From positions 992,001-1,056,000 of the forward strand of contig VJWM01000025.1 in assembly GCA_010909165.1 (NCBI GenBank): a stretch of DNA of 64,000 nt, written 5' to 3'. Position numbers and translations under genes: made by a program. The notes beneath the pieces were generated by a model, which was given only the letters and a program-made list of their open reading frames with translations, was not told the DNA's origin and ran no database searches. Below, one piece after another: positions 28,491 through 60,787 of the stretch. The stretch comes from Anthoceros angustus. Lineage: Eukaryota > Plantae > Anthocerotophyta. Positions within the stretch are counted from its first letter, which is position 1, and each line of letters starts with the position of its first letter.

Positions 28491-29721
28491 TCAAAATATA
28501 AGAAGATTCTGTAACCTTAAACAACCAATTTGTCTTAATCTACATATAATCTTGTGGGCAATCTTTGCATGTTTATTCAATTGCGGTTACCCATGCCAAT
28601 ATAAATATTGGTGTGTCCACTTTGCAGCCAATCAAAGCAGATGGGATTTCATACCATGAAGGCAAAAGCAACCTAGAGGTTACAACCCAGGAGTCGTCAA
28701 AGTAAATACCAAGAGTCACTAAAATGAATGATTGAAGTGTTTAACTATTATGTAATATTTATTTATTTATTATAATTAATGAAGAATGAAATGAAATATT
28801 TTTTGCCAAAAATGAAAGAATGAAATGAAATGGACTTCATGACATACAAGAACGGACACACAATCGTAGAGGAAAATAGATGGAACTTCACCGGCTCACA
28901 CATCGACATAAGTCGTGAGGTTTTAGATTTTTTAGACTTATAATTATTTATGTAATTTCTAATATAGCTATAGTTAGATCTGCCGCTTGCTGCGACATTG
29001 TGAATGTTTGCTGTGACTTACTGCGACATTGTGAATATTCGCAAAAAGAGGTTGATAATCAATTTTTCTTGAGAAACTTTTGAACCCTTTTCTACGAATT
29101 GGCATTTCGACAGGATAGATTGAACTGAACTCCACATACTAAACTCTAAAGCCTAACTATCACCACACAAGAAAAGTGCCAACTATCGCCGCACAAGAAA
29201 ACTAGTTTTGAATCTTCCTAATAATGACTCATAGGTGACTTCAGCCATGGTGCTTAGTTATTCTTTTTTATTGTGACCCTTGGGGTCTCCCCATGATGTC
29301 CTAATGTAGATGACATCTCCTTGTCTGCTCTCTTCCAATAAAGTTCATTTTTTGTTTTTTGAACCAAGTAGACTAAAAATATTAAGTGCACTATTATCAT
29401 GGTAGAAGAATAATTTAGTTCCTTAGAACTGCACAATGCACGAGTTGTAAATGAACCAAATTTCATACAATGGCCACCCATATGTGTAAAGCTGGAATTG
29501 TCAATCCATTACGGTCCTTAGTTCAAGAGGTTAGAATATAGTTCCTCATTGCTCGGATCTTAACATCTATTTCAATGAGGCAGAGTCAAGCGTGGAGTTA
29601 GGACTATATGGACTATGAGAGGAAATGCTTTATTAAGGGGGAAGAGATGAGGTGAGCTCATGTACCTTCGAAAGGCCATTACATGAAACCTAAGGGTCAT
29701 ATGAGGGAGTAAATAGGGAAG

Positions 29722-29811
29722 GAGGTCGAGGTCCAATAGATTAATTATGAAGAGGTCGAGGTCCAATAGATTAATTATGAAGAGGTCGAGGTCCAATAGG
29801 TTAATTATGAA
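29722..29811. repeat. 30-bp tandem repeat x3 (GAGGTCGAGGTCCAATAGATTAATTATGAA)
   Basis: Three near-identical copies read directly. Confidence 0.95.
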
Positions 29812-29919
29812 GCCAACAACATGTAAGTTTGTCCTCCCTTTCAAGGAGTGACATCCAAACATGAGTTCATTGCAGCTCCCTAGTTAAGCGTCCTTCAGAG
29901 GGATTAATGCTCTTATCTT

Positions 29920-30365
29920 CATGGCCCTGCGGGGCTACTTGTTATTAACATCATGCAATTAAGCTGCTTGTTATTAACATCATGCACTTAAGTGTTTGAG
30001 GAGTTCTCTTACCTTCATGGCCCTATGGGGCTACTTGTTATTAACATCGCAACTAGTTAAGCTCTTACCTTTCTTCTTCTTCTTCTATATGTTACTCCAG
30101 ATCAAACAATTTCCCATCAAAACCAAGAACAAGAGCTTCTAAATTCTTCTTCTTCTTCTATATGTTACTCCAGATCGAAGTCCCCCTCTGCCGCCAATTG
30201 TTAGTACCCTAGAGGTTATTCCACATCAAAATCCCAGAGGGGGACTTCGATGTATAAAGAGGGGGACTTCGATGTATACTTTGAAGTGCCCTATGGGTTA
30301 TTCCAGATCAAAATCCCAGAGTGGGACTTCGATGTATACTTTGAAGTACGAGACTTCGATGTATA
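29920..30365. repeat. Cluster of short dispersed direct repeats, TE/LTR-like
   Basis: cttcatggccct..ggggctacttgttattaacatc x2, ttcttcttcttctatatgttactccagatc x2, gacttcgatgtata x4. Confidence 0.7.
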
Positions 30366-35748: not shown

Positions 35749-38700
35749 ATGGAGAATGCTGAATGGTGGTCGCAGCAGGGGTCTCTGGAGGGGTGCAAAT
35801 GGGAGGAGCAGGAGGCGAAGAAGGCTGTTGATCGGGCCACCAAGTTCATGAAGGATGAGAAGTATCAGAAGGCCATATCTTTGCTGGAAAAGGCCGAACG
35901 GTTGTTCCCTGGTGTCAAAGGTCTGTCAGAGCTGATGGCCGTAGCAGAAGTTTGCTTGGCAGCTACATGGGAACAGTGCACATGCCAAGCAAGGCCTCAG
36001 AGCAAAACTCCGGACTGGTATCGTGTGCTCAAGGTCACCTTTACTACCCCGAGCCGAAACAATTCCTTTCCCTTCGAGCATATACTGTATTGGATGTGCA
36101 GCTGCTTATGTTGGGGCTAGTGAGAAACACGTGGACGTGTCTTGCAGGTGGATGAGAAGGCAGATACTAGCGTCATCAAGAAACGATACCGCCAGCTCGG
36201 TAAGCCTATCAAATCCTGCTTATTTGAGGTGTGGAGGAGCTTGACTTGAATTTTCTGGGCTAGGGCATCGTAGAGATTAAAGATATCTGAATCTTGTAGT
36301 GGTTTGGGATTCCCGTTGTGCAGTAGGTAGACTCGGGTGGTACTTTTCTGGGGAAGATTGTAGTGGTTGTGATGGAGGTAGGCGTTTGGATTTTGTCTGG
36401 TTTTCAGACCTAGACATAGGAAACAGTCCTGCCAAAATAGTACTTGGCACCCTGGTCGTGACTGATTTTCAGTATGATGAAGGCTTGTTGTGCTCGAGCA
36501 GAAGGTACTCATGATGTCCATGCACTATGTCATGTTACGATGTTCCAGCTCTGTTGCTGCATCCAGATAAGAATAAGCATGTCAAAGCTGAGGCAGCATT
36601 TAAGCTTGTTTCTGAGGTAAATCTGTGGTGAGCATGTATTTGATGGCCACTTGTTGCAATATGCCTGATTGTTGGATAGCTTCCGAACTGATGTTATGTT
36701 TAAAAAGTGTTGCTGACGTCGATGCTGGTTGGCAGGCATATGCATGCCTCTCGGACAAATACAAGCGTAATTTATACACACTCGGAAGGTCAAAGGCTAG
36801 GTGCAAGAGGTGTGTGCTGACCAGTCGTATGCAATCACCTACTCCATCGTTTGGCTACTTCCAGGAACATCAGCAGAAAGTGTCAGTTCAGCAGAAGCCG
36901 CAGGCACCAGCTATAGCAAAGCAAAGCCCTTCCGATTGGAAATCGGATGCTGAGAAGCTGCAAATGTTCCGGGAGAGGGCAAGGGCAAGGGTCTCTTCTC
37001 TGGAACACGCTTGGGATGCTAGGAATTCAAAATGGAACGCCCGAGAAAGGGCTAGAGGGGATCGAGGTTCCATTGAGACTTGCAGAGATCAGCGATCTGA
37101 TAAAACAGATTGCTTTTCAGACTTGAGACAACAGCTAGAACAGATGGAGAAAGACTCTAGACAGGGTATGCGTGACAATTTCAACTGGAGGGGTTCAGGT
37201 AGGCAATCCCAGACTGCAGAAGGGAAAACTGGAGATAGGACGTTCACTAACCTGAAGGAAATAGGAAGGCAGAAGAGGAAGGAGAAACCAAACGTCTCAC
37301 AGAGCTTGGATGATTTATTGAACATGTTGCGAGCAGAAAATTCAGCGTATGGAAGAAGGGACTATGTCGGCAGTCGAGTAGAATCTAGAAATGGGACGAA
37401 GGAAGACGCCATAACACCAAGGTATCGTGACAGTACTGTGGAGGCTGGATCGACTTCACATGTGGACCAACACGTCCGTTCGAATTGGTCCTCAGGCAAC
37501 GGAGAGGCTCATATTTCTGACAGTGCTGCGGCTGCTGATCTCCATGCTCGAGCCATCGACAAATTTTTGGCTGACCTGGTGCGCTCAGTGGACCGTGCGG
37601 CTATGGAAGAGGTCCCCGAGGAAGAGGGTATATCAACAACTGCGGAGGACCACTGCTTCCAGAGCAGAGATGCGTCGGACAAGAGTCAGCAATCCTCGGC
37701 GCATTCACCGACAGCGGAATTTGGCAGTTTTGCAACGGGGACTTCTCAATGGAACAGCAAGAGTCCTCGGAGTGGGGAAAGCGCCACAGAGTCCCCCAAG
37801 GCCGATGATATAGAGGATTGGAGCGGATCATACAAGCAAGAGTTTGAGGGGAACATGGCGTCTTTCTCCGAGGAAAATGTTTGTACATGCAATCTGGCAG
37901 GAGGAGAGCACTCGGAACCATTTGACTTCAACCCAGTTTGCTCCGAGCCCAATTTCTCAGACCCCTTTGAGAAGGAAGGAGATGATAATCTATTTGTGAG
38001 CAATCTAGGGGAATGCAGAATAAGAGATATTCTAGAGGATATGGACACCACGTTTGCAGCGAACACGGCTGCCACCTTCTCTGCAGAGGCAGAGTCACCA
38101 GCAATGGACATCCCTGTGGTGCAGGATGCTGCTGAAGCCGTTGCGGAGAGCCCGTTCCGGTTTGGGAGTTTTTCCAAGCTCGCAAAAGAAGATTCAACAG
38201 CTGCCAGCAGCTCTACCCCAACAACTTCCAGCACAGGTCGGGCACCAGAAACATGTGAGTTTATGGATGGAGGGGTCAGTAAGATCAGAATACCGAGTAT
38301 GCATGCTGCTTATGATGAGGTGACATCCAGACGTGTCTTGACTCCCTCACGTAGCCCTCTCTACTCAAAGCATCTTCAAGCTAGGACATGTGATGTATTC
38401 GATTTTCAGGCAGGTGTCCGACAACGGGAGAGTCAGTTTTGTAGATCACCTGGGGTCCAGACACCTGCCACAGGTCGTCTTTCGAAACCCCATCCTGCTA
38501 CTAGTCCACTGAATGGAGAGACTGAGATTGTAGATGCATTTCTCCAGAGTAATGAGTCAACTGGATTAAGAGAACCTTCACCAAGGTCTGCAGACGGCAG
38601 TCTGCATGTCACACAGGGAAGAAGTGAGAGGCTCCAGGAAAGTCCCTTGGAAGGCAAGACTGAGAGCCGGCAGGCCGGAAAGGATTCTTGGAACTCTTAC

Positions 38701-39008
38701 GACCTGGACCGCGAGCAGACAATCATGAGAGAGCACAAGGAGGTGTGTATTTGCCCTGTTCCTACTTCAGCCTTGATTTGCATCAAGGCAGAGTGTCGTC
38801 GTCCTCACCACCTCAAATTCAATTGTGTTTTGTGCAGAAGTCAGACCAGCTGCTTAAGACCTTGGAGCGCCTGAGAGAGGAAGCCAAGTCTGTGGCTGCG
38901 ACTCTAGACAACCTCAGGCGCACTGTGGGAACAGACACAGAAGTTGTCGGTAGCAGCAGCTATTTTGTAAACAGTTGCCATCCGGCAGCTCAAAGCCTGG
39001 TGGCCTAA
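35749..39008 (+). CDS. DnaJ/J-domain protein with long disordered C-terminal region and terminal coiled coil
   Basis: N-terminal helical EAKKAVDRATKF..AERLFPG; J-domain PDWYRVLK|VDEKAD..IKKRYRQL|LLLHPDKNKHVKAEAAFKLVSE|AYACLSD; last exon LLKTLERLREEAKSV ending at 39008. Confidence 0.88.
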
Positions 39009-39640: not shown

Positions 39641-40569
39641 TCACGGAGCAGAATTTTTTCTCTTCTTCTTCTTCTTCCTCTTCTTGTTAGTGTTGGCTTG
39701 CTCCTGGGCCTTCTCCGCTAGAGGGCAGAAGCTGTCGTCGGTGCTGGGATACAGATGGAAATGCCAAAGTCTGTGCACACCATCAACCCTGTTCTCTGCG
39801 CAAAGAAACTCCTCCGCAAAGGTCTTCTCCACAATACGGTCCACGTCGTGCAGCATGATATCAGTGTAGTTGCCGCCAGCAGTGGATGTCCTCTGCTTGG
39901 CCATAACTGCCATGGTGAAGATGGCACCCATCCTGCCGGGAGCCTCAGGGAAGTAGCCTCTGGGAGCGTCTATCATCACGACATCCCACTGCACGTCCTG
40001 CACACCCTCGGGGAGGTTGGTGATGGCCAACCTGCAGCGGGAGGAGGGAATGTGCTGCGACGGCCTGCAAGCCCCGCCCCTCTCCGCCCTGGAATGCTGC
40101 AGCAGGTCGCCGTTGTTCTGCAGCTGCGTGCTGTAGTTCATGTGATAGGCCTCCAGCCCCGGATGCCTTTGCTGCATCTCCGTCACCCAAGACGCCGTCT
40201 CCTCCAAGAACACGGTGCGACCGCCGTGGTTGAGCGTCTTCCACATCAAGGTGTCGTACCCCAACCCGAACACAAGAAAATTGCAGGGCGCCCGCGCCGC
40301 CAGAACCTTCTGCGTGATGAGAATCTCCTCCCTGCTCTGCTGCGGGATGTCCTTCGCCTTGGCGTAATGCACAATCGCCAGAGCAACATCTTCCGGCAGC
40401 CCGCCTCCTCTCCCCGGCCCCGCAAATCCGTGGTCCAGCACCAGGTCCCGCGCCATGCCCGATTGCCAAATGTTGGAGTACCACAGGACGAAGAAGAGGA
40501 ACACCCCCAGCAAACCGCCTACCAAGATCCGTCGCGACCTCGACGCCGTCTTGTGCAGTACCCCGCCAT
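39641..40569 (-). CDS. DUF579 polysaccharide O-methyltransferase (AGM/GXM-like), with apparent frameshift next to the start codon
   Basis: TM segment, PCNFLVFGLGYDTLMWKTLNHGGRTVFLEE, WDVVMIDAPRGYFPEAPGRMGAIF, HDVDRIVEKTFAEEFLC; the ATG at 40569 is out of frame by one base at a G run. Confidence 0.9.
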
Positions 40570-41774
40570 GTCCCGCGGTAGGGCACGGCGCACCAACGAC
40601 TCAACTGAAACACGGAATCCCCCCTCCTGCACCTCCGGCCTGTCCATCCCGGGTCGCCTCAGCACCGAAGCCGGCGGCCATACAACCTGCGCAAGCCCCG
40701 ACATACACACGTACATAACCGCCCTCGCTCGCATCCATCTCGATCGCACCCAGTACATCTTCCCACACACCGACAGCACACAAAAGAACGCATCTCATGG
40801 CACGCACCACCTCACCTCGGGAGCACAGAATTGCAAAACGCAATCGCACGTGCTGTGTTGGAAGGTTCCAGGTCGGGACTCAGGCGCCGCCTCCAACGCG
40901 CCAAATCGCAATCGCGTTCCCTTCCCCTGATGCACAGGCAGGACCACCGATTCAACATTCACTCTCCACACCCCCAGGACACCGGGCCACCCACGTTTCC
41001 TGCTTCCCACCCAGCCAGCGCTTCAACAGCTTGCGAAGCTTCGGCTTCCACCCAGCCCTTTCGCCTCTCTAACGTTCCAGTTGCGACATTGCAACAGAGA
41101 TCGGCTATCCAACATCCCCGTGCCGCAGGAGGAACACTGGCGCAACTCTTCCTTTCCAAGAAAGGAAGAGTATCCTTTCCATCTGCGACAAATCCCCAAA
41201 CAGTGCCGCAACTCGAATCATTTTCCAAGAAAGGAAGAAAAGGAAGAGTTTGCTCAAACTCACAGCCGCCGGTCACCGCCCGTACGAATTCAAGCCGTCG
41301 TTTTGCCGCGTGCACCGCTCGCGGCCATGGCGGCCGATCCCTCCTGCCGTGTGCTCCTCCCTTGAAGCTTGCGACTGTGAGCCGTCTGCACATCAACTTG
41401 CACCTGAATCCCTTCCACACTGTGGAAGAAAGCTCTGTTGCAAACGAGACAGGCCGAGTTCGGATCAGTTGAAGGAAGCTGCCACTCATTGTAGCAAAGT
41501 GACAGATCTGATCACTCCCATCTGTGTTGCAAGGCACAATTCCCGAATGCTGCGTCGATCGAGGATTGCAAAGCGGCGGAAGAGGGGAAGGTTTAAGAGA
41601 TGGAGAGGATGGACAGAAGAGGAGGGGGTTTCAGAGATTCGGGAGGCTGCTATTCACCGATGCCGGAAAGAGCATCTCGTGCACCGCCCTAATATGACAC
41701 AGCACGTAGATAAATAGCGTCCGGGATAGCAAACTGTCAGTCCAGGTCTGCATGCCGTGGTGATGAGAGTTGCG

Positions 41775-43265: not shown

Positions 43266-44939
43266 TTAAGGTGAAAGGGTAATCCACTCCTGAGGTTTTT
43301 TCCTTTTCCTTCCCTTGTATGCTGCAGCATAAGTTGAGTGAACATATGGGGAGTTCGACAGTTCCCGAGGGATGGGGGATTTGGATGCCCGAAGAATATC
43401 GATCAGACCTCTGAACAGAGCCCTGTCGTCGTTGTTGATGAACGCAAATGCTGAACCAGGCTTATTCATGCGAGAAGCCCTGCCTATCTGGTGTACATAA
43501 TCTTCAAGAGAATGGGGCATGTCGAACACTATAACCTGACTGACCCGGAGAAGATCCAGACCACGGCCAAGCACTCCTGTGGCTATCACCAAAGGTATCT
43601 CACCTTCCAGAAACGAGGCGAGACTCTTCCTCCTCTCCTGCGTCGACTTCTCCCCGTGAACAGCAGCAGTTTTCAGGCCGGTGACTGCCTGCACCGACTC
43701 TGCCAGGAGCTCTGCCCCCGGCCTGCTGTTCACGAACACCACAGCTGGAGGCATGAAGTGCTTGGAGCTGGCGAGAATTTCAAACAGCTTCTTCTTCTTC
43801 TGATTGGATTCCACCCAGATGATGGTCTGCTTCACAGCGCTAGTTGGCAGACCAGGGTTCCCCACAGAGACTACTAGGGGACATTTCAGCAGCCTCTGTG
43901 AGAGCATTGCAATGGCTTGAGGTACCGTGGCCGAGAACATGAGAATTTGAGGCTGAGACAATGCAAGCATCAGCTGCGTGACTTGTTCAAGAAAGCCCTG
44001 TTCCAGCATGCAATCCACTTCATCCAGCACAAGCATGCAGATGTCCTCCAGTTCCACCGGATGCTTGGTTAGAAGATCGATGAGTCTCCCAGGTGTGCCG
44101 ACTACCAGCTCCACCCCGTTCTCGATCCTGTACACCTGCTGAGGCAGAGCATCTCCTCCCACAACCAGAGCTGTTTTGAAGCGCAGACCCTTCGCCAACA
44201 CCTTGGCTTGCTCTTCCACCTGCCCGCACAGCTCTCTAGTCGGCGTAAGCACCAGAGCCAAAGGCCTATTATCGTGGTGAGACAGCTTCTGCGTGCGGAT
44301 CCTGCAGCTTCTCTCAATAATCGGCAGCAAGTACGATAATGTCTTCCCTGATCCAGTTGCCGCAGATACCAGCAAGTCTCGCCCAAGCAAAGCCGCAGGG
44401 ATAGTCTGCATCTGCACAGGTGTCGGACTCTCGTATCCCGCCCTTTCCAGGTTCGCCTGAAGCCGCGGCAGAAACCTGCAGTCGCAGAAAGCCAGAACAG
44501 GGGCCGGGACATCACTCCCTTGCACATGGATGTCCCCTGCTTTCCTGAGCGAGTTGGCCTGCTCTTCATTCACTTGATTGCGCAATTCAGGCTGCCATCG
44601 TAACTGCGCTGCCCCGATCGGTGCTGGGCCGGCCTGATCTTTAACCCTAACGCACTCGTCAGGAAGCACAATTCTCCGCCCCGCCAAACAGGACCGCAGC
44701 TCAGAGCCAGAACCGGAGACACGAGGCACAGGCACAGGCACAAGCGGATTCTCGGCTGGCGCAGCCGAGGATTCTTTCCGCAACCGCAGAACCACCGCCT
44801 TGCACTCCAAGCTGCAAACGTCATCATCCGTCTCATCACAGATGTACTCCCCATACCGCTGGCAGACAACACAGCAAGGCTCCCCTGGCGCTGGACTCCT
44901 TTGATCGGCGCTCCTTGCAACGACGCCATCTGCAGCCAA
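43266..44939 (-). CDS. RH41: DEAD-box RNA helicase with zf-HIT (DDX59/RH41-like), intronless, 557 aa
   Basis: CVVCQRYGEYICDETDDDVCSLECK, PTPVQMQ, AATGSGKT, PTREL, LDEVD, FSAT, HRIGR-equivalent HQIGRASR. Confidence 0.93.
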   Translation of the reverse strand: MAADGVVARSADQRSPAPGEPCCVVCQRYGEYICDETDDDVCSLECKAVVLRLRKESSAAPAENPLVPVPVPRVSGSGSELRSCLAGRRIVLPDECVRVKDQAGPAPIGAAQLRWQPELRNQVNEEQANSLRKAGDIHVQGSDVPAPVLAFCDCRFLPRLQANLERAGYESPTPVQMQTIPAALLGRDLLVSAATGSGKTLSYLLPIIERSCRIRTQKLSHHDNRPLALVLTPTRELCGQVEEQAKVLAKGLRFKTALVVGGDALPQQVYRIENGVELVVGTPGRLIDLLTKHPVELEDICMLVLDEVDCMLEQGFLEQVTQLMLALSQPQILMFSATVPQAIAMLSQRLLKCPLVVSVGNPGLPTSAVKQTIIWVESNQKKKKLFEILASSKHFMPPAVVFVNSRPGAELLAESVQAVTGLKTAAVHGEKSTQERRKSLASFLEGEIPLVIATGVLGRGLDLLRVSQVIVFDMPHSLEDYVHQIGRASRMNKPGSAFAFINNDDRALFRGLIDILRASKSPIPRELSNSPYVHSTYAAAYKGRKRKKPQEWITLSP

Positions 44940-47202: not shown

Positions 47203-50200
47203 TCATCCCGCAGACTGGGCCTTCAGCTTCTCCAATTGATCCAATGCGGTCTTATCACCCGCAGCAACCTCCGCGAGGAAGGCAAATCGGGATGCTGGGT
47301 CTTCCACTTGGTACAAAATGAGTTGCAGAAGTAGGCCCTTCAGAGTTTAACACATCCAGGATGTTAGCTTGTGTCCCACGACTCATCATACGAATGATCC
47401 TCTGAGGACGATCAACACGTTCATGCAAATTGACAGATTTAGAACAAAAGGAACCGCGATCAAAACAAACCTGCTGTGAGGGCTTCCGAGAAACACTGTG
47501 TAACAACGATTTCGCGAACTTAATATTGGACAGGGCATCCTTTCCCACTGGGTCTCCAAACACAAACAGTGCAATATGATGCAACACCAGGAAAAAACTC
47601 ATGGAGCCAAGTGCAGCTGCTTTCTCCAGTTTCCCAAGAGTCCATGCTGACACATACGCATCCAGTATCTTCTCGTTTCTCTGCACCAATCCAACGCAAC
47701 CTCCAAGATTATAAAAAGACCCCCCCCAGCTGTCACTGATGTTTCCTGAAAGATATCAGCAATCAAACACAGTCATTGAGGTCATGGGAGTCCTATGCAC
47801 ATACCTCTGGAGGATGGAGATATCCTGCTTGATTGCCACAGCACAGGTTAAGAGGAGGAAGAAGATGCAAAACTTGAGATTCCGCCAAGTGTTGCCAAAT
47901 TGCAAGTCTAATTGGATCTGGAACATCCCGCCGCAAGTGAAACGCTACCTGGCGTGCAAACACAAGAGCTCCGTAGGACTCAGCTGAAAAGTTGTCAGCC
48001 AGTGTTTCAGCAAACTGTGTGTAGTTACTATCTACAGCATATAGATCCAGAGGCTCTCGAGATGCTGAAACTTCTGGCAACCCGTCAACATGACCACCCT
48101 TGACTTCTTTGAATAGAGACGATCCATCAAGCTGTAAAGCATACATCTCCTGCAGTGTGTAGATCAGACCCTGAGCAGATTGTTGGAAGAATGTGTCACC
48201 TCCCAGCACAAACACGGTGGACAGTGCATGGACCTTTCTAGCCATACTAATGGGAGAGGATCCAGAGTCAGCAGATCTTAGCGCACTATCTGACATGACT
48301 TCCACTGCCAGAAGAAAAAATAGACCAGAGCCAATAACCTCCTCCGACTGGTGAGCCTTTCGAGCACCGATGCCATCATCTACTTCCTGGCCAGTAGTCC
48401 AAGAATTTCGCCCTTCGTGTTGCTTTGCCACATTCGTAGCAAGGGGGCTCGGAAACCAGTCCACTGGGAGTGGCAATCTCTGTCCAGCCCATTCCCTCCC
48501 CACGCTACTTACAATTTCATCTTTAACCTTGGTATTGTCCTCGTCTATCCTGGCCAACTTGTGAAGTGCTCCGTTCTTCTGGTCTTCTTTAGGAGTCTTG
48601 TTGTCCTTTCTCCGTTTTTGCGACAGCCAGGTCTGTGTAAAATGCTGCAGAAGAGCGTTCCTGATCCTTTCGACATCCAATTGTGACATGTAGTCTACTT
48701 GACCTATATTGTCCTGCAAGTCCTTCAATTCGGCACAAACCTTCAAGGCTGATTGCACACCCTTTGACAATGATGTCAGGGCTTCTTTATCCAGCAAGAC
48801 AGAAGAAAGCACTTTCTGCAAAAAATCACCCTCACCGGGCCCAGCGGTCATGGCGACGCCCAAGCCCACCTGAAATTTCCAGGAGAGATCAGCAGAAGGC
48901 ACGCATGCAGTTCCCACCGAGGATATATCCTGTTGGACAGCAAGTGCTTTTTCTTCATCATGAGAGATGCCCAATCTTGGTGTCGTCTCAAGAAGGTCCA
49001 ATGCCAAGACGGCAGTTATCTTGGCTAATAAGAACCGTTTTGACCAAGTTCCTCCACCAAGCGATCCCCATCCCAATCCAATGCCAGGAGCTGGCCCTCC
49101 TCGGCCATGGAACTCACTTGAACTTAAAAACTTCTGATTCAAGATGACCTCCTTTCCACAGCAATCCAGCAGGTACCTCAATTCCTGTTCACCACTTGCG
49201 ACAAGTCCGCGAGACAGTATCTCATGCGCTCTGGTCTGAGATCCTGAATCAGGCTGTGGTGAGGATGCTTGTGGTCTTGCCTCTCTTATGAGGTGATCAA
49301 CCACAGTTACCAGGCGAACTATACCATGCAGACAGCTAGTCGCGATTATCGAAGTGTCACAATCAGATGCCAATCTTAGTTTGTACAGATATCCTGCAAG
49401 AGAGCATCCATTATTCTCAGCAGCCCCTGGAGTAAAGTTGAGAAGTTTGCTGTTCACAATTGACAGCCCGAGCTGTGGCACAAACGTTGGAAGCCATGGA
49501 GCACACGAATTCTGTTGACTTGCACGAGTCCAAAGCTGACCCATGTCACTCAGTGGCAGTATTCGTCCACAGACTGTTGAAAGAAAATGAAGCACAGCAG
49601 CCAGTGCACCCAATAGGTTTTTATTGCTCTCACCAGTGGGGACATCCTCAGAACCTATCTTGTCCGCTTGGACCTCCTGTTTGTCCCATAGCGTAACAAG
49701 GGTTGCTAGGTGGTCAGATGATAACCAATCAAGAGCTGTCTTAACCAATGGCACTGCAACTGCCCATGACCAGTTCGTATGAATGGAAATCTCATCACTT
49801 GATGCTGTCCCTCCCCCATTCGGATGTATAAGAGGCAGAGTCCTTGCTATCTTCTCCAGCAAACTGAATGATTCACGAGTCAGGCAGAAAGCCACAGAGT
49901 TTCCCTTACTGTTATACTCCTGTTCTGAAAAGGGGGCCAGCCAAAAGCAAAGGGCTGGGTAGAAATCTGAAAACAAAGAGATCCCAATCTGATGGGAAAT
50001 ACAAACCCTCCACAGCCGCAGAGCCTCTATTAAGGTGGGACCTAGGCCACGGAGGTATTCTTGGCCGACTCTTGAACGAGTTGGCAGAAGATAGGCCTGC
50101 TGAAACAATTCACTTTGTGCCACCTGCAGGGCGCCTGACTCAGCAAATCTGACACAGTTTGACCGGCTCGCCTGGCTGAGGACCTGCCAAGGTCACCCAG

Positions 50201-52732
50201 ATCACATTAGGAGACAAGAAATAGAAACTCAATGAGAGACATGTCCACATCGGACATGCAAGCTGCTCGTAAAACAACCCCAAGGATGGCAACGCCAGCC
50301 ACACCTTCAGTAGCTGGATAGCCTTTGTCCGAGCAGGCCGGATACCAAGCACCATATTCTCATCACTTGCCAGGAACTGTTGTATGATTGTATCCATCAA
50401 CCTTGGACACTTCATCACTGCTTCTGCACCTGCAGGTGAATGACGGGCTAGCGCTATAACAACATCCATTAAGAATTCTTCCGCTGCCACATTTTTCTCC
50501 ACCTGAATTGGGAGCATTTAAATCATTATCTGCAACTACTGAGGAAAAGTATTCACAAACATAGCAACAATTTACAGCAACAGAATAGACGGTGCGTCAC
50601 ATCTACATATGCAGAAGCAGTTGAATGACTCTTTACGATGCAGTACCTCCAAAATATAGCGAATTCTAGGTAAGATGCCCATCCTGATGAGGGCAGCAGC
50701 TACATCCTTCTCGGCAATTGTTTCGTCATCTCCCACTGTGTCTTGCCCATCTTCAGGCTTTGCCTCATTGTTTGTAGCAACAAACATCTCACTAGGCTTC
50801 ACATTGTACTTCCATCGGCCACCACCAATGAAACCCTCATCTTGCTTTGTTTGCCTTCGGAAGACAGGAGCGGTATACAAAGGTCTTTCACCAAGCCAAG
50901 AAGTCTACAAATCACCACCATAAAAAAATAAGACGCACCACATGCAGATGCTGCACAGCATGTAGGCAGAGAGAGAATCAAACTACCACAACTCTTGGAA
51001 GAAGAAAAGATGACTACCTCGTGTAGTTCAAAAAATCTCTCATTCGCCGAACAACTCAGTAAGGCCTGTAGGGCTCTAGCACAGGCAGACACAGTAGTGG
51101 CATACTTGTCATCCAGAAGGGATCTCAGAGTGAGGGCAAGTCTTGGCTCAGGCCCTACAGCGTACGTCCACACAGCCTGCCAATCAACCGGGCCACTGCT
51201 ATCGGGAACCTCTGCTTGTTGCAACCCAGATAAAGCTTTGCTGAGTAGAGAAGCAAGAAGGCGAAGGGCCATAGTTCTCTGACCAGGAACCTGCACAACC
51301 GAAGTAATTACAATCAGTGTGACAAGCTAAAGAAGGAGGTATGCGGGGTTTGGCTCTTGCCTCCTTAACAAAGGAACAACAAAGAGTGGAAAAATTGTGC
51401 TAACCGTGCTGCGAGCTAATGCAGCAGCTTCCAAAATGGTATAGCCAAACGCAGCAGGATCACCCTCAGTTCTCAGGAGATCACGTTCTGCCACCGTCTG
51501 CGCATCTCCCTTCAGCTCACGTATCCGATCTGTGAGAACAAACTCACAACATCAGGACCGGATGGCCAACTCATCTCCCAAACTATACATATAGCAGGGA
51601 GACAGAAAGACCAAGCTGAGACAAGCGATGATTACCAGGATCTGCGGGGTCCACATCCCCTACAGCAACCACCCGCCCATCCAGATCAAATTTCAGCAGC
51701 CTTACAGCATTAACTCTCGCAGACCACGAGTTCCACAACGAAGCAACATCGACAGTTCCGGAACTCCCTGAGTCCACAGACTTGGCACCAGCTTTAGACA
51801 CATCAGCATGCAGTATTCCTGGTGCACCACCTCCCACAAGCCCAGCTTCCAACGATTGGGGACTCCTCTGCTCACTCCCACCAGATTTCCGCCCCCCTCG
51901 TAACATCCTCTCCTTCACTTCACCTCGTTTTCTCAGCATTTCCAGGATCTCAGGCCGGATCCTCTCCTTCAGCGCCACCCGAGCATCCTCCAATTCGGCA
52001 GCGGACATAGAGAGCACAGCCGTTCTATTCTCACGATCAATGGACTCCACGCTGGACGCAACAGGCACCCTTTCTAAGCCCCGATTCCGCTCCACCCCAT
52101 CTTTCTCGCCCGTAGCGTGAGCCTTGACCACACCAGGAGCATGCACACTCTCCGCTGCAGGCTTCCCCACGCCATGCCCTGCTCTCTTCACGGCCCCAGC
52201 CCCTCCGTCCCCCCCACGAGTGCCTCTGGATCTCCCGAAAAGCGAGCTCGGCTTCTTCCGCAGCAGGGGCTGGGCGTAGCTCGCATGCTCATCTACGCCC
52301 ACTTCCTCCACATCCCTCCCCGCCTCAGGGAGGAGGTAAACCTCCTTCACGGCAGGATGCCAGTGCTGGAAACAAAAGCAACGCCAACCCGTATGAGCAA
52401 TAAATGCAGGTGCCCAGTGCTGCTGGAAACAAAAGCAACGCCAACCGTGCAAGCTCAAGAGCATAAACACCAGCATGCAATAGACGCAGCAAACATAAAA
52501 CATGCAGTGTCTAAGCCAATACCGGCCCCTCAGACCGGTGCCTGGCCACGGGGAAAGGATTCACTCTCGGCCCGGGAGCTGCAGCTGGAGCAGGCGCACA
52601 CGCCTTCACAAACCCCTTCTCCTGAATCTTCCCCAACACCTCCAGCGGGACATACTTGCTCTCTGAAACAGCTTCGGCTCCACCCCTTCCTACCGGCCCC
52701 TCACTCAGCTCTTCGGCATTTCCGCTGGACAT
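47203..52732 (-). CDS. IYO: Transcriptional elongation regulator MINIYO (RPAP1 homolog), multi-exon
   Basis: PFPVARHRSEGP, RPAP1_N ESIDRENRTAVLSMSAAELEDAR..ILEMLRKRG, RPAP1_C ERDLLRTEGDPAAFGYTILEAAALAR, MGILPRIRYILE, RLPLPVDWFPSP, C-terminal GLLLQLILY..RFAFL..LEKLKAQSAG stop at 47203. Confidence 0.92.
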
Positions 52733-54673
52733 GATGCTTGCATTCCCACCCCGTCCCTTCGCAATGAGCTCAATTCCAACACCAGCAACAGCTCCCTGGA
52801 GCTTGCGCGCTGCGTATCAAAATACGCATTGCAAAAATGACCTCCCACAATTCGTCCACAGAGCTCTTCGCAGACAAAGGCCCCCGGGCTCCTGCTGCCC
52901 CTGCCGGGACTCACATGCTTATATACAGGGCATTGCACTGCCCACCTCGGCAAACACAGACCCAGGAGCGGAGATATCACATGCGTAAAGCGGGTGTAAT
53001 TGGAAAACAAATGTGAAAGCAAATCACGCTCGACGGACCGCACTCGACTCGACTCGACTGGACACCGGACCCGACTCAAACTGGACATAAGCAAAGCAAG
53101 AATCGTGGATCGAGGAAGGGAGCTCTCGAGCCACCATCGCAAAGCGAGAAACAAGATGACGAACACGGCACGTGGGGCCACGGTCCGGTGGCTAGTCTCA
53201 ACACACAAGAAAAATTAGCCACAGGCACACGTGGCAGAGTTAGGGTTCACCGCCCCACCTGGGCTTCGTGATAGGTACAGGGTGGCGGTCTGAAAGTGGG
53301 TTGGAAAAATATCGTACTTTCATTCCCGGAGTTGTGCTGGAGGCAGCAACCTATGGGGGGCCGCCATGTCGCCAAAACACTGGTGCATGATAGAGGCAAG
53401 GCGAGGAATGCACGGAGCACGGACTGGCGGTTCGAGACGCGATCGAGACGTGATGACACTCGGCCGGACCGGTCTGGTTGTGGTGACGACTCTGCGTTTC
53501 CGTCGCCAAGCTTTCTGCACGGCAACGGCAGGAGTGAGTCTGTTTTGAGACGAGGGCACGTTTCAATCCGCATTGTGCAAGGACTGCAACATCAACCTTT
53601 GTTTGGTACGAATGCAACATAACATCCTTGCTTTGAGTTAGTAGCTTGGAAGATGAGAACAACAATCCTTGTTTCAAGCTTTGTTTGGACCAAATAGCTA
53701 GATGCACAGCTAGCTGAGGCATGCTACACTTGTCTGTTTTGTTGGCAAACAAATCAACAACGTAACCAGCGTGCATGCATTTTTTTTTTTGCAGTTTAGT
53801 ATGTTAGCATTCGGGCATGGATTCTGGAAGCTGTCGTTCTTTAAAGCTCCTTAGGAAAGTAGGAGAGAGAGGAAGGATGTCTTGCGGTTGGGTAGCCAAA
53901 TCCCGAGGGAACCAGCAGGAGGAAGGTCGTTGCATACGACGACAGGTGTACTCACATGCCTTGCTGTTGTCGACCCGGCTCCCCATTTACTACACACATA
54001 TGTATGTACATATTCGCAAACATTATGTTATCACCCCAGGTAGGTATGTACGGGATGCAAGGTGGAGGGACCGCCACATCCCGCAGGCGGCAAAGACTCT
54101 CTTGAGGGTTCTGGAATGCGGTTTTCTCTCTGGCCACTCAGCCACTGTTGCTCTCACAATGATGCGTGGCGGAAACGCAGTGTTAGCCTGTAACCTACCA
54201 TCGCTGCTGGTGTGGACGCCCATGTCCTCGACCTCCACTTCTGCGTGCTGGTCCCCACTGTGAACCGGGGACGGAACTCTGTGGAAGCAACGCGTGGATG
54301 GATTCCTGTTCCACGATCTGTGCCTGACTCGGGAATCAAACACGGCAACCCTGGGGCCTTTTGTCTGCTTCAAGCACACTGCCTTCCTGGGATATGTCCA
54401 GCATAGACATGCATTTCTGCCGACCCAATCACGGCAGTGAGGATGGAACACTGTCCACGACAGTCCAGCCCACCTACTGCTTCTCATCAGTTTCACTTCA
54501 CGAGATGGCTTCGGTTCCCGAATCCCTCGGCTTCCTCGGGAAGCATCGAAGATAGAACCAGGACACCACCACATGAAATGAAAGGCACATGAGATGGCAA
54601 ACAAACGTGTTATGAACCTGCAACTACTGTATCCCGGACTGGACTGCGGGAGCCGTCTCTCGTCTCTCGTTCT

Positions 54674-57600
54674 ATGCCAGCCACGTTCCCTCGGCGGACC
54701 GGGTCACGCATGCCCGTCTCTTTGGCAAGGTCCTTTTCCTCCATAGCTCCGTCCTTGAGGTCCTTGTCACCGGTGAACGCTTTGTGCCAGCCCACACACT
54801 GTGAGGGTATTGAACTGTACCGGCACCTGAGACAGACGGCGGTGAAGCCGACCAACCGTGTGTTGGTGGCAGTCCTGAAGGCATGTGGGGGTGCAGCGGA
54901 TTTGGCGGCAGGGAAGCAAGTCCATGCCGACCTTCTGGGAAGGTTCGTGAAGCCCAGTTTGTTTGTTGGGAATGGGCTTGTGGAGATGTATGCCAAGTGC
55001 GGGAGCTTGGAGGATGCCCGCAGAGTGTTTGACACATTGCCGTCGAGGAATGTGGTGACGTGGAATTTCATGATCGCAGGATATGCCAAGCATGGGCTGG
55101 GTCGAGAGGCTCTTTCTCTTTATGGGAGGATGGAACATGAGGGCATCACTCATGCCAACGATGTTACGTTTGTCAGCCTCCTCAGAGCGTGTGCCAGCAT
55201 CGGAGCTTTGTGTGAGGGCAAGAAGCTTCACCTTCAGATTCAGGAAAGAAAACTTGAAGCCAATGTGATTGTGGGCAACTGCTTGGTGGATATGTACGCC
55301 AAATGTGGGAGCATAGAGGACGCTCGCAGGCTGTTTGACAGATTGCCCACAAAAGATGTGGTCACGTGGAACGCTATGCTGGCAGGGTATGCTCGGTACG
55401 GGCTTGGTCACGAAGCGCTCACTCTTTTTGGGAGTATGCAACGGCATGGCATCGTTGTTGCTGATAAGGTTACGTTTGTGAGCCTCCTGAAAGCGTGTGC
55501 CAGTGTGGCAGCTTTGAGTGAAGGGAAGGACCTGCATTTCCAGATTCGAGAACGAGGACTTGAGGCTGACGTGGTTGTGGGTAGCAGCCTGGTGGACATG
55601 TATGCAAAGTGCAGCAGCTTGGGAGAAGCCCGAAAGGTGTTTGACAGTTTGCACACAAAGAATTTGGTGACTTGGAATGCCATGCTTGCAGGGTATGCTC
55701 AGCATGGGCTCGCTGAAGAAGCGCTTGCTCTGTATGCAAGCATGCAACAGGAGGAGGATACAGGCGCAGCAGCAGATCATGTTACATTTGTGTGCCTCTT
55801 GAAAGCATGTGCAAGTGTTCGGGCCCTCCATGAGGGCAAGCAGCTTCATCTGCAAATTCAAGAACGGGGGCTTGAATCAGATCTAGTTGTGGGTAGCAGC
55901 CTTCTGGACATGTATACAAAGTGTGGGAGCCTGGAGGATGCCCGCAGAGTGTTTGACCGACTGCCGGCAAAGAGTGTGGTGACGTGGAATGCCATGATTG
56001 CAGGCTATGCCCATCATGGCCTCGTTCGAGAAGGTTTCATTCTGTACAAACAGATGCAAGAGGAAGGCATTTATTCAGCTGACAATGGTCCGCTTGTGAG
56101 CCTCCTGAAAGCATGTTCGAGGAATGGAGGGCTGGGTGACGCCAGACACCTGCACATTTACGTACAGGAAAAAGGGCTGGATGTTGATGTTGTTGTTGGC
56201 AGCAGTTTGGTGGACATGTATGCAAAGTGTGGCAGCGTAGAGGATGCACGCAAAGTCTTTGACCAAATGGCATGGAGAGATGTGGTGACATGGACTGTCA
56301 TGATTGCAGCATATGCTCAGCACGGGCTCGGTGAAGAAGCCCTTAACCTCTATACTCGCATGCAGCTAGAAGGCGTCAGTCTGGCTGATAATGTAACGTT
56401 TGTGTGCCTCCTGAAAGCATGTGCCAGCATTGGCCCTTCAGCCTTGCATCAGGGGCAACAGTTACATTTGCAGATTCAGAAGAAGGGGTTTGAAGCATAC
56501 GCAGCTGTGGGCAGCTCTTTGGTGGACATGTATGCGAAATGTGGCAGTTTACGTGATGCTCGTAGAGTGTTTGATGGATTGCTGGGAAAAGATGTGGTGA
56601 CATGGAATGCCATGATTGCAGGATATGTGAAGTATGGCATCGGCCAAGAAGCCCTTGCTCTGTATGCAAATATGCAGCAGGAGGGCATTGATCTGGCTGA
56701 CAATGTTTCATTTGTGTTGCTCCTGAAGGCATGTGCCAGTCTTGGTGCTGTAGGGTTATGCAAGGGCAAGGAGCTTCATTCCCAGATTCAGGAAAGGGGA
56801 CTGGAAGCTGATGTTGTTATTGACAGTGGCCTGGTGGACATGTATGCAAAGTGTGGCAGCGTGCAAGAAGCCCGCTCCATCTTTGATAAAGTTCTTGCAA
56901 GAGATGCAATGACATGGAATACCATGCTTGCGGGCTATGCTCAGCATGGACTTGTTAACGATGCCATTGCGCTGTACACAGATATGCCACAGGACTGTGT
57001 TGGGCCATCAACGTTCGTGTGCCTCCTGAAAGCTTGTGCCAGCACAGGAGCCATTCATCAGGGAAAGCAGCTCCATTTGCAGCTCCAAGGTAGAGGACTG
57101 GATGATGACCTAGTAGCTGGTACTGCCTTGGTGGACATGTATGCAAAATGTGGAGCTTTGGATCATGCTCGCAGAGTGTTTGACAAACTACCATCAAAGA
57201 GTGTGGCGATGTGGAATGCCATGATTTCAGGCTGCGTCCAGCATGGGCTTGGTCAAGAGGCCCTCCTTCTCTTCACAAGAATGCAACAGGAAGGCATTTG
57301 TCCGGCTGATAGTGCTACATTTTCTCAGCTTCTTAACGTATGTGCTAGCCTTGGAGCCCTGAGCAAGGGCAGGGAGGTTCACTGCACAATTCAAGAACGA
57401 GGACTCGAGAGCGATGCGATTATTGGCAGCAGCTTGGTGGATATGTATGCAAAATGTGGCGCCTTGGATGAAGCTCGCTCTGTTTTTGACAGACTGCCAA
57501 CTAAGGATCTTGTAACCTGGACGGCCATGATCTCAGGATACGATAAGCAAGACCTTGGTCAAGAGGCTCTTAGTCTTTTCACCCGTATGCATCTGGATGG

Positions 57601-58729
57601 TATCCACCCAACCGACCATGTGGCATTCATCTGCCTCCTGAGAGCATGTGCCAGCACTGGAGCTCTGCATCAGGGGAGGCAGCTTCATTCTCTGATTCAG
57701 GACAGAGGACTGGAAGCCAACATTTTGGTCGGCAGCAGCCTTGTCGACATGTATGCGAAATGTGGAAGGATGGAGGATGCCCGGAAAGTGTTCGACAGAC
57801 TACCGACGAGAGATGTGGTGACATGGACTGCTATGCTGAATGGTTATGGCCAGCAAAATAACGTGGAAGCTGCAATCCAGTGTTTTAAAGCAATGCAACA
57901 CCATGGAGTGGAGCCCAATGGTGCCACTTTCCTGTGCCTTCTTGTGGCTTGCAGCCACGCGGGTCTCGTAACAGAGGGTCAGCAGTATTTCAAGATAATG
58001 AAAGAGCTTTATGGCATCACACCGACTGTTCATCACTATAACTCCATGGTTGATCTTCTTGGCCGATCAGGGAACCTTGACGATGCAGAAAACATGCTGG
58101 AGAGTATCCCTGTCAAGGATAACGATGTTGGGTGGACATCTTTGCTTAGTGCTTGCAAAAGCCATGGTGATGTAGAGCGAGGAGAGAGATGTTTCAACCG
58201 GCTTGTGGAAATGGGACCAGGAAACGCACCTGCTTATGCACTCTTGGCTAGCATCTACTCCCATGCTGGGATGTTGAGTGATGTAGAAAGGATAGAAAGC
58301 CTGAGAAAAAGTGCAGGAGCTTACAAGATGCCTGCAAGGGCTTGCATTGAGATCAACCGCGCAGTGCACAGGTTTGTTGTCGGGGGTGATAGAGACGACA
58401 CTTCCTCAAAGCTCAAGAGTGTGAACTTAAGGTTGAAGGAGGTAGAGGGCCTTGCACCTCAAACACAGCTGCTCGCCAAGCCAGAGTCTGACACAAGGAA
58501 CGAGGACACCTTATGTGGCCATGCTGAGAAACTAGCTCTGGCCTATGGACTCCTCAACACTCCAAAAGGTACCACCTTGCTAGTGACAAAGAACCTTCGA
58601 ATGTGCAATGACTGTCACAGCGGCACCAAGATAATGTCCAAGCTCGAAAAGCGAGAGATCGTTGTAAGAGATGCCCACCGGGTGCACCATTTTGTAGATG
58701 GCTTCTGTTCTTGTGGTGATCGTCACTGA
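54674..58729 (+). CDS. Intronless PLS-class PPR protein, 1351 aa, ten DMYxKC-bearing repeat units plus E domains and a DYW:KP (DRH-type) deaminase domain
   Basis: Ten (D/E)MY(A/T)KC repeats at ~104-aa spacing; C-terminus KMPARACIEI..VHRFVVG..CGHAEKLALAYGLL..KNLRMCNDCH..RDAHRVHHF..CSCGDRH; N-terminus resembles an organellar presequence (ARSFSS). Confidence 0.97.
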   Translation: MPATFPRRTGSRMPVSLARSFSSIAPSLRSLSPVNALCQPTHCEGIELYRHLRQTAVKPTNRVLVAVLKACGGAADLAAGKQVHADLLGRFVKPSLFVGNGLVEMYAKCGSLEDARRVFDTLPSRNVVTWNFMIAGYAKHGLGREALSLYGRMEHEGITHANDVTFVSLLRACASIGALCEGKKLHLQIQERKLEANVIVGNCLVDMYAKCGSIEDARRLFDRLPTKDVVTWNAMLAGYARYGLGHEALTLFGSMQRHGIVVADKVTFVSLLKACASVAALSEGKDLHFQIRERGLEADVVVGSSLVDMYAKCSSLGEARKVFDSLHTKNLVTWNAMLAGYAQHGLAEEALALYASMQQEEDTGAAADHVTFVCLLKACASVRALHEGKQLHLQIQERGLESDLVVGSSLLDMYTKCGSLEDARRVFDRLPAKSVVTWNAMIAGYAHHGLVREGFILYKQMQEEGIYSADNGPLVSLLKACSRNGGLGDARHLHIYVQEKGLDVDVVVGSSLVDMYAKCGSVEDARKVFDQMAWRDVVTWTVMIAAYAQHGLGEEALNLYTRMQLEGVSLADNVTFVCLLKACASIGPSALHQGQQLHLQIQKKGFEAYAAVGSSLVDMYAKCGSLRDARRVFDGLLGKDVVTWNAMIAGYVKYGIGQEALALYANMQQEGIDLADNVSFVLLLKACASLGAVGLCKGKELHSQIQERGLEADVVIDSGLVDMYAKCGSVQEARSIFDKVLARDAMTWNTMLAGYAQHGLVNDAIALYTDMPQDCVGPSTFVCLLKACASTGAIHQGKQLHLQLQGRGLDDDLVAGTALVDMYAKCGALDHARRVFDKLPSKSVAMWNAMISGCVQHGLGQEALLLFTRMQQEGICPADSATFSQLLNVCASLGALSKGREVHCTIQERGLESDAIIGSSLVDMYAKCGALDEARSVFDRLPTKDLVTWTAMISGYDKQDLGQEALSLFTRMHLDGIHPTDHVAFICLLRACASTGALHQGRQLHSLIQDRGLEANILVGSSLVDMYAKCGRMEDARKVFDRLPTRDVVTWTAMLNGYGQQNNVEAAIQCFKAMQHHGVEPNGATFLCLLVACSHAGLVTEGQQYFKIMKELYGITPTVHHYNSMVDLLGRSGNLDDAENMLESIPVKDNDVGWTSLLSACKSHGDVERGERCFNRLVEMGPGNAPAYALLASIYSHAGMLSDVERIESLRKSAGAYKMPARACIEINRAVHRFVVGGDRDDTSSKLKSVNLRLKEVEGLAPQTQLLAKPESDTRNEDTLCGHAEKLALAYGLLNTPKGTTLLVTKNLRMCNDCHSGTKIMSKLEKREIVVRDAHRVHHFVDGFCSCGDRH

Positions 58730-60787
58730 GCAGCGGCTGATGATAGAAAGGTGCAAAAAGTCTGCCAATCTTCCCTTGAGTTCCGCGTTAGAGTAAATTG
58801 CCACGACTGAAAAGGGAAAAGCCTTCACAGCCGTGGGGCCTTATTTTGCTGCCAGTGCCAGCCTGGCCTTAAGTCTTTGCAGCCTTTCCTTCTTTATTTC
58901 CTTTGTGAAAAGTCCTTACAGCCTTTTCCCTTCGCACGCCTTCTCCTCCCGCAGCTTGCTCTTGCAGAGCGATGCTGTGCTGTGTTCCTATATCCCTCTG
59001 CTGAGAATTTCACAGGGAGTCTGCATGGTTACATTCATGTTAGCTATCTGCTTGGCCCCTTCATCTCCCAACGTGACTGGCAACACCAGCCTCCCTCCTT
59101 TGTGGTGTTTGTGTTGTCACCGACACAGTTGGGTGATGAAGCGGCTAAACAGCTATCTGAGATGACGAGCACCTCACCAGTCCGTGCCAGACTCCCCCCC
59201 AGCTCCTTGTGGTTCTGCGTCCTCTCGTCTGTGGTAAAGTTTGGTGTCTTTGTTCGGGATTCGTCAAAAGCCCGTCCCCATCCTGAGGTGTTGTCGCCTC
59301 GTCGGAGACCGTTTTTACCAAATTCCGGCAGGCACTTGTTGTAGTCACCCTGCCATCTCACTGCAGCTTCTTCTTGTGTGCAGGATTGGCTACCTGCGAA
59401 CGACGCAATCGTGCGATGCTCACGTTTCTCGGGTTCGGTCAGGGCAGGACGCACCTTCAAGAAAGTGCTGTCGCTTTAAGATTTACACTGTTCCTTGCTT
59501 CTGGTATGTAGTTTCTCTGCAGAACTCTCAGATGTATGCAGAGGAGATTGTTTGGTTCGTAAGCATGTGACAACAAGCTTGCATAGGGTCTTGGCCAAAT
59601 GTAACCTGCGTCACAAGCCCGAGCATCATGCAACTCGTGGCATCTTGTGGAGTCCTCTTCTAAAATCCAAAGCAAGGAACAGCAAAAGCTTCACAAAACA
59701 ACACAATCCTCACACGAATTTTCGTACCTACTGCCGAATCGGAAAACAATAATACCACGTATGGAAAACTTCTTTTAACAAGGAGTGCTGTGTCGGCCAA
59801 ATAGAGACCTGTAGAGTATTGTTGGCAAAAATAGGGACCTGAGTAGGCAAGGCAAATGAGACAGCTCTACCTTCCGGGAGACAATTTAAACAAGCACGGA
59901 TTCGTGTGGATCAGCCGCAATCCCAAAGGCAAGATTGGCGAAGGCACGCGAAAAGGCGGGAATTTGGAAAGCAGAGCAAGGAGAGCAGGACATGGCGCGG
60001 AGAGCTACCAGTGATGAGAGGAGTACTTACAATGATGGCGGAGGAAGGTGGAAATCGCAGCCTGGATTACCGAATGGAAGTACGCCATGCAAGATATCAT
60101 TCTTTGCTAGAGTTCAGTAAACCAACCTCTGTAAAAGCACCGTCCCTCGACCAACTCCCACCCGCTGTCCAAGCATTTGGTAGGAAAAGGTTGAATGTAA
60201 GCAAATCGCAAACATGGCAAGGGTCTTCAAGGGAAGGGAAGGGAAGTGCAGAGCGGGAGCAGATAGAGAAGAAGAGCAGGGTTATGTCTCGTCTAATATA
60301 TCTTGTCTTCTACAAGCCGGTACATACTGTATTCTGAGCCACTGGCGGCTGCAATAAAGCCTTACTGAGTTCCATGTTGCCATTTGGCTCTCTCTCAGCG
60401 GAAGGAAGCTCGCAGCCTCAGCCCCGTAGTCTTCTACGAACCTTCTATCCTCGTGTTGCTGCTTCCTCTCGCGGCTGCATTCTCGTCCTGCACCAGTTGC
60501 GTCGTCGGAGCATCTTCTGCCTGGTGCGCTCTGGTTGCCAATTGTTTTCTGCCGAGACAAGCACGTCGCTTCATTCGCATCCTCAGACGAGTCTTTCACC
60601 AAGCAAAAGGAAAGCAGAGCAAGCGGAGCCAAGCCAAGCAACGCAGAGCAGAGCAGACAAGAGAAGAAGAGCAGAGCGAAGAAGAAGAAGATGAAGAAGC
60701 TGGCAAGGGCGAAAGGCAAGGACAGGCAGGCCAGCAGCTCAGCCACTGGAAGCATCCAAGATCCCGATTCGCACGAGGATGACACCT

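Follow-up and report, generated by a model that had tools for sequence, protein, structure and literature searches.

The longest open reading frame (ORF) in a 64,000-nucleotide stretch of the hornwort Anthoceros angustus (assembly GCA_010909165.1, contig VJWM01000025.1, forward-strand positions 992,001 to 1,056,000; hereafter the window) raises the question of whether it encodes a native enzyme of reverse, U-to-C organellar RNA editing, as a first-pass annotation of this DNA had proposed. Up to 2025 (PMC11845758), the evidence for editing in this direction came exclusively from consensus-designed KP domains. At that time, neither an assay nor an assigned site was available for native KP proteins, and no activity had been demonstrated for the hornwort DRH subgroup. 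Our analysis indicates that the gene very probably encodes a PLS-class pentatricopeptide repeat (PPR) protein of the DYW:KP class and the DRH subgroup, an assignment based on its sequence and predicted fold. That the product is a native DYW:KP editor, U-to-C activity included, is the reading that we favor with moderate confidence.

Class membership and structure of the deaminase domain

The ORF occupies 54674..58729 (+), exceeds all others in the window by far, and runs without interruption from ATG to TGA over a 4056-nucleotide (nt) frame that encodes 1351 amino acids (aa). Matches to the Pfam families PPR, PPR_1, PPR_2 and PPR_3 are spread throughout the protein, followed by E_motif at aa 1164-1225 (E = 2.5e-13) and DYW_deaminase (PF14432) at aa 1260-1349 (E = 8.5e-33). 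The C-terminal segments read ...AGAYKMPARACIEINRAVHRFVVGGDRDDTSS...CGHAEKLALAYGLL...TKNLRMCNDCH...RDAHRVHHFVDGFCSCGDRH; thus all motifs quoted in the first-pass annotation (KMPARA, HAE, the CNDCH zinc ligands and DRH) were confirmed, with their coordinates checked by translation. At the opposite end, the putative presequence (aa 1-25) is rich in Ser and Arg and almost devoid of acidic residues, and a composition count over the first 45 aa gave one acidic, five basic and 11 Ser/Thr residues. From the composition of this presequence we infer that the 1351-aa protein is targeted to an organelle.

The deaminase domain comprises exactly 133 aa (aa 1219-1351), and published lengths are 132/133 aa for KP domains (PMC11845758) and 135-136 aa for the PG type (PMC11845758, PMC12733224). 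In the KP residue numbering of PMC11845758, its N-terminal and central parts possess M1, P2, A3, R4, A5, C6, G64, H65-A66-E67, K88, M92, C93, C96 and H97, and its C-terminal part possesses V113, A116, V119, C127, C129 and D131-R132-H133; Lys88 corresponds to K1306 of the protein. Alignment against the PG-type domains of a synthetic PPR-DYW protein (PDB 9kfx), OTP86 (PDB 7o4e) and DYW1 (PDB 7w86) revealed that the query lacks four residues at the 'GDxSHPxxxxIY' site. The segment from the His of VHRF to the Gly before HAE is 51 aa long, compared to 55 aa for the gating domain of OTP86 (H837-G891; PMC7611903), so that the shortened gating region without SHP noted earlier is real.

An AlphaFold2 model of E2 plus the DYW domain, computed from a 27-sequence alignment, has a mean pLDDT (predicted local distance difference test) of 81.8, with a poorly modeled β-finger in the gating part (~40-53 at model residues 80-96). 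It superposes on the synthetic PPR-DYW protein 9kfx with a TMq of 0.82 (E = 1e-17), and on the OTP86 DYW domain 7o4e with a TMt of 0.87.

A word-index protein search using the E2 and DYW part matched 38 proteins. The best 19 (P0001-P0019), which come from Logan assemblies, are 52-64% identical over E2 plus DYW, and the highest identity over the DYW domain alone is 69% (P0007). These 19 proteins possess a KKPAxA-type box (varied in a few), HAE (HVE in P0003) and KNLRMC; they end in DRH (P0002, P0004 and P0006), in DRH plus two residues (P0005), in GRP (P0010-12 and P0018) or, for the remainder, in other variants. Further down the list, the transcriptome proteins P0020 and P0021 are 50-52% identical and end in DMF, and Adiantum and Ceratopteris proteins are 46-48% identical, mostly with HAE (HSE in two from Adiantum) and variant ends (DMF in Ceratopteris). 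Proteins of the HSE/PG/DYW type are only 32-41% identical in this search. A word search with the full-length protein matched no orthologue among the database proteins; identity over the full length reached 50% at best. P0007 (1155 aa) and P0002 (845 aa) both derive from the Logan sample SRR33208242; other top matches may also stem from it, which would make this sample a second source of DRH and GRP genes.

In a maximum-likelihood tree of DYW domains built from a small reference set of 37 rows, the query is a member of the HAE/KP clade, which has a support of 97/94. It belongs there to a group of 16 rows, of which 12 are DRH-like and 4 GRP (support 96/80), separate from the PG-type rows; with respect to the GRP rows, the DRH-like rows form a paraphyletic group. 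Hornwort DYW:KP proteins fall into two subgroups, DRH and GRP (PMC9478123), the former defined in work cited there (Gerke et al. 2020; Gutmann et al. 2020), and the presence of both DRH- and GRP-ending relatives is the hornwort pattern described in that paper. The H65-A66-E67 triad, the length of 133 aa, the grouping in the tree and the DRH end are each as expected for the KP class and its DRH subgroup; in KP domains, the zinc-binding His is followed by Ala or Cys rather than Ser (PMC11845758, PMC9478123). Because motif table, alignment, tree and predicted fold agree, and the domain groups away from the canonical PG domains, the class assignment of the first-pass annotation is upheld. The KP class itself, with its subgroups, its abundance and its restriction to hornworts, lycophytes and ferns, has already been published, and the gene described here stands out only by its length, the replacement of K by M in its box and its intactness.

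PPR array, transcription and selection

The PPR motifs, anchored on the recurrent signatures VxTWN, TFxxLLxAC and GxxLVDMY, form an array that starts with a degenerate P motif (aa 26-60) and an L1-S1 pair, continues with nine P1-L1-S1 triplets, and closes with P2-L2-S2. This gives 33 PPR motifs in addition to E1 and E2, slightly more than the ~30 estimated earlier. The tandem P, L and S motifs (~35, 35-36 and 31-32 aa, respectively) followed by P2-L2-S2, E1 and E2 are those of a PLS-class protein.

The nine full triplets share a mean protein identity of 58% (range 48-69%) and a mean DNA identity of 69% (maximum 75%), and TRF detected a period of 306 nt with 67% matches; triplets of paralogues are 46-56% identical to those of the query. 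Given these triplet and period values, the array appears to be old and consensus-like rather than freshly amplified. A recent internal tandem amplification was considered and rejected, as the triplet identities resemble those of the paralogue triplets and lie far below the within-array identity of 71-87% in arrays such as P0040, P0045 and P0050, which are conifer and other PLS proteins. The earlier description of the array as highly regular is therefore accurate for its (P1-L1-S1)n layout, which is consensus-like, but not in the sense of near-identical repeats. Its description as unusually long applies among the 24 KP-type relatives fetched, a small and assembly-limited sample in which all proteins (753-1155 aa) are shorter than the query, but not more widely, as conifers, ferns and lycophytes commonly have PLS proteins of 1300-1800 aa.

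The specificity residues vary between motifs, and 22 of the P and S motifs are code-readable. If S2 faces position -4, the code summarized in PMC12733224 for the fifth and last residues (TN/SN = A, TD/SD = G, ND = U, NN = Y) predicts the upstream sequence nnYYnUUnAUnaUnGGnGUnGynaUGGGnGAnY from -36 to -4, where lower case marks a weaker assignment and n an L motif.

Public sequencing runs were mapped on 53300-59290, namely run X1, labeled RNA by guess, and DNA run X2, both from one sample, and run X3 from a second species. Eight overlapping X1 contigs span 54398-59288, free of differences and of own-locus joints. Over 53300-54397 the depth of X1 is zero, whereas X2 has a depth of ~6x. As X1 covers the gene and leaves 1.1 kb upstream empty where X2 has reads, the gene is probably transcribed, in a pattern that would suit an unspliced RNA of ~4.9 kb.

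The copy in the second species is represented by short Logan contigs only; these X3 contigs are ~93% identical over most of the coding sequence and the 3' flank, without indels in the covered coding sequence, the DYW domain included. The 40 X3 differences listed, a sample that lies entirely in the array (55042-56932) and beyond which 200 more exist, comprise 30 at codon position 3; 29 are synonymous and 11 non-synonymous. The X1 coverage, the ~93% identical sister copy free of coding indels and the 29:11 ratio together indicate that the gene is probably live and under purifying selection. One non-synonymous difference, D470E at 56083, falls on the residue that closes a P1 motif and thus turns ND into NE at position -24; because it hits a position of the PPR code, the two orthologues may prefer slightly different targets.

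Direction of editing

In the mechanism that we propose, the presequence would carry the protein into the plastid or mitochondrion, where each of the 33 PPR motifs would pair with one base of a ~33-nt stretch in a single organellar transcript, S2 facing position -4. E1, E2 and the DYW:KP domain would set the pyrimidine at position 0 in the zinc site of H65, E67, C93 and C96, beside Lys88, and the domain would most likely turn U to C by a lysine-dependent, crosslink-forming amination, as in the designer KP proteins. The target would be one or a few organellar sites. U-to-C conversion is the most likely function because the query keeps the HAE, the CxxC and the Lys88 of these designer proteins. 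Three of the seven designs, the GRP-based KP2 and KP3 and the fern-based KP6, edit U to C, which needs both HAE and CxxC (Ichinose et al. 2022, PMC9478123). Designer KP proteins are active in Escherichia coli and human cells (PMC9478123, PMC11845758), and Lys88 is essential for their U-to-C activity and crosslinks to the edited base (PMC11845758), a crosslink also described in PMC11332814.

Several points weigh against this reading. The DRH-based design KP1 is not among the active ones (PMC9478123), and hence the earlier statement that synthetic KP domains have shown U-to-C activity is valid for KP2, KP3 and KP6 but not for KP1; moreover, the activity of natural KP proteins was unknown as of 2025 (PMC11845758). 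The exchanges F133H and E64G, with or without L113V, leave KP6 variants that edit C to U only (PMC11845758), and the query carries H133, G64 and V113. In its M1-P2-A3-R4-A5 box, the Pro and the AxA are kept and the Gly of the PG pair is absent, but the eponymous K is replaced by M. As to transcription, X1 is an RNA run only by guess, and a hole in contig coverage proves nothing. The 276-nt putative leader (54398-54673) contains eight upstream ATGs, the first at 54409, so that transcription may actually begin further downstream, or else the main ORF is preceded by several upstream ORFs.

The box also varies in other natural members of the clade (MP in P0019, LP in P0015, KL in P0001 and KA in P0006), and the M in the K-P pair is treated here as variation within the family, in line with the earlier description of KMP as a variant of the usual KKP. 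L6C, D116A and I119V push KP6 towards U-to-C (PMC11845758), and the query has all six 'consensus' residues (C6, G64, V113, A116, V119 and H133). The natural GRP relatives also have G64, V113, A116 and V119, and H133 alone is specific to DRH; the editing direction is therefore not readable from sequence.

The same residues bear on a different reading, which we regard as unlikely, in which the DRH subgroup consists of C-to-U or bidirectional editors whose zinc deaminase runs hydrolytically on at least some sites. KP6 displays both activities in human cells, and the G64, V113 and H133 of the query are the residues of its C-to-U-only variants (PMC11845758). However, G64, V113, A116 and V119 of the query also occur in the GRP relatives, U-to-C editing is displayed by the GRP-based designs, and C6, A116 and V119 are the residues that push KP6 towards U-to-C. 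Likewise, KP1 lacked U-to-C activity in E. coli, but it lacked C-to-U activity as well (PMC9478123). Lys88 is conserved in PG-type domains as well, and hence is not diagnostic of direction, whereas the KP class as a whole matches U-to-C sites by its PPR code, as stated in the Introduction of Ichinose et al. with reference to its ref. 13 (PMC9478123). A natural DRH-type KP protein may also differ from the GRP type in needing a partner, acting in both directions or acting on C. We hold this possibility only tentatively; if true, it would explain the failure of the DRH-based designer, and the product of the present gene could be the first natural KP protein for which a specific editing site is established.

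The inactivity of the DRH-based designer would likewise fit a catalytically silent RNA binder, either a specificity or stabilizing factor working with a DYW protein in trans or a protein with a non-editing role. The divergent β-finger of the gating part (pLDDT ~40-53 at model residues 80-96) and the loss of the eponymous K point the same way, but all zinc ligands, the catalytic Glu and Lys88 are retained. In addition, the listed differences of the sister copy (55042-56932) are mostly synonymous, its covered coding sequence is free of indels up to and including the DYW domain, and full-length DYW proteins of early land plants usually edit alone (PMC10482289, moss PPR56); a silent binder is thus improbable. 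Finally, a young dead or unexpressed copy whose frame is still open by chance would suit the guessed RNA label of X1 and the eight upstream ATGs, but is very improbable given the open 4056-nt frame, the ~93% identical sister copy, in which coding indels are absent and synonymous differences outnumber non-synonymous ones 29:11, and the coverage by X1 of the gene and not of its upstream flank.

Of the proposal that this is a native reverse-editing enzyme, the class is thus supported, with probable expression and selection in its favor; the reverse direction is probable only, in view of the inactive KP1 and of H133, G64 and V113. A test of native activity could reasonably start from an intact, apparently transcribed and selected DRH gene whose code is long and readable. 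Hornworts hold ~1,600-2,300 PPR genes per species (PMC13386178, PMC10030945), and the value lies in an already-described class rather than in this locus; genes of this kind are numerous in hornwort genomes.

Locus features and comparison with known systems

The features of the gene are collected in Table 1.

Table 1. Coordinates of the DYW:KP-type PPR gene and its parts, in positions of the window.
Feature	Coordinates	Strand	Evidence
Coding sequence, 1351 aa plus stop, intronless	54674..58729	+	ORF listing, Pfam
Putative organelle presequence, N-terminal 25 aa (MPATFPRRTGSRMPVSLARSFSSIA)	54674..54748	+	Composition
PLS-class PPR array, 33 motifs	54749..58123	+	Motif table, Pfam PPR families, 306-nt period
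E1 motif, aa 1151-1184	58124-58225	+	Motif table, Pfam
E2 motif, aa 1185-1218	58226-58327	+	Motif table, Pfam
DYW:KP-type deaminase domain, 133 aa, aa 1219-1351	58328..58726	+	Pfam, alignment, tree, model
KMPARA box in place of the PG box (KKPAxA in relatives)	58325..58342	+	Alignment, translation
Gating-domain equivalent, 51 aa, without the four SHP-containing residues; β-finger of low confidence	58367..58519	+	Alignment, model
HAE: zinc-binding His, KP-typical Ala, catalytic Glu	58520..58528	+	Motif table, translation
KNLRMCNDCH: Lys88, Met92, CxxC zinc ligands, then His	58589..58618	+	Motif table, translation
C-terminal DRH plus stop codon	58718..58729	+	Translation
Putative unspliced transcript, ~4.9 kb; X1 contigs colinear, 0 differences	54398..59288	+	Probable RNA run

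The neighbors in the window, a xyloglucan fucosyltransferase, RPAP1 and a DEAD-box helicase with zf-HIT, are land-plant nuclear genes. The RPAP1-like gene (RPAP1_N and a weak TPR_RPAP1 match; 47793-52503, minus strand) spans two or more long ORFs. It is oriented head-to-head to the PPR gene; their coding regions are ~2.2 kb apart, and the two genes may have a promoter region in common. The helicase, with its N-terminal HIT zinc finger, is encoded by a single, apparently intronless 557-aa ORF (43266-44939, minus strand) and has a DDX59-like layout. Two further ORFs on the plus strand, 36625-38874 (749 aa) and 39755-40930 (391 aa), gave no Pfam match at E <= 0.001; the 749-aa product is rich in Ser, Glu and Arg and looks disordered. 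The GC content rises to ~0.60 at 40-42 kb of the window, and an AT-rich stretch at 26001-30000 has a GC content of 0.31-0.38, compared to a window average of ~0.48-0.50.

Among the known systems, the hornwort DRH subgroup, on which the designer KP1 was based, has the same PLS array, E1, E2 and 133-aa DYW variant as the query. They have in common the xPAxA box, HAE, KNLRMC, 'RDAHRVHHF', the DRH end and the four-residue deletion at SHP, and identity over E2 plus DYW to the nearest relatives is 55-64%. The query differs in having M for K (likewise found in P0019) and 33 PPR motifs, and a length of 1351 aa against 753-1155 aa in the 24 KP-type relatives fetched. The GRP-type KP proteins, the basis of KP2 and KP3, belong to the same clade and possess the same HAE, G64, K88, M92, V113, A116 and V119; they differ in ending with G-R-P instead of D-R-H, and in having G instead of C at position 6.

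The fern-type KP proteins, the basis of KP6 and represented here by P0020, P0021, P0025 and P0026 with DMF or DLY ends, are the sister group inside the HAE clade of the 37-row tree. They share HAE, K88, M92 and the short domain with the query and have a KKPAxA box, whereas they differ by E64, L/I113, D/N/T116, I/M119 and an aromatic last residue, with 47-52% identity over E2 plus DYW. The canonical DYW:PG proteins, namely OTP86 (PDB 7o4e/7o4f), DYW1 (PDB 7w86) and the synthetic protein 9kfx, have the same deaminase fold with its gating insertion and two zinc sites, the same PLS-E1-E2 architecture and the same PPR code. However, they carry a PG box, HSE, 'SHP', RVC, 'RFHHF' and a DYW end of their own in a domain of 135-136 aa, and their identity to the query is 35-42%.

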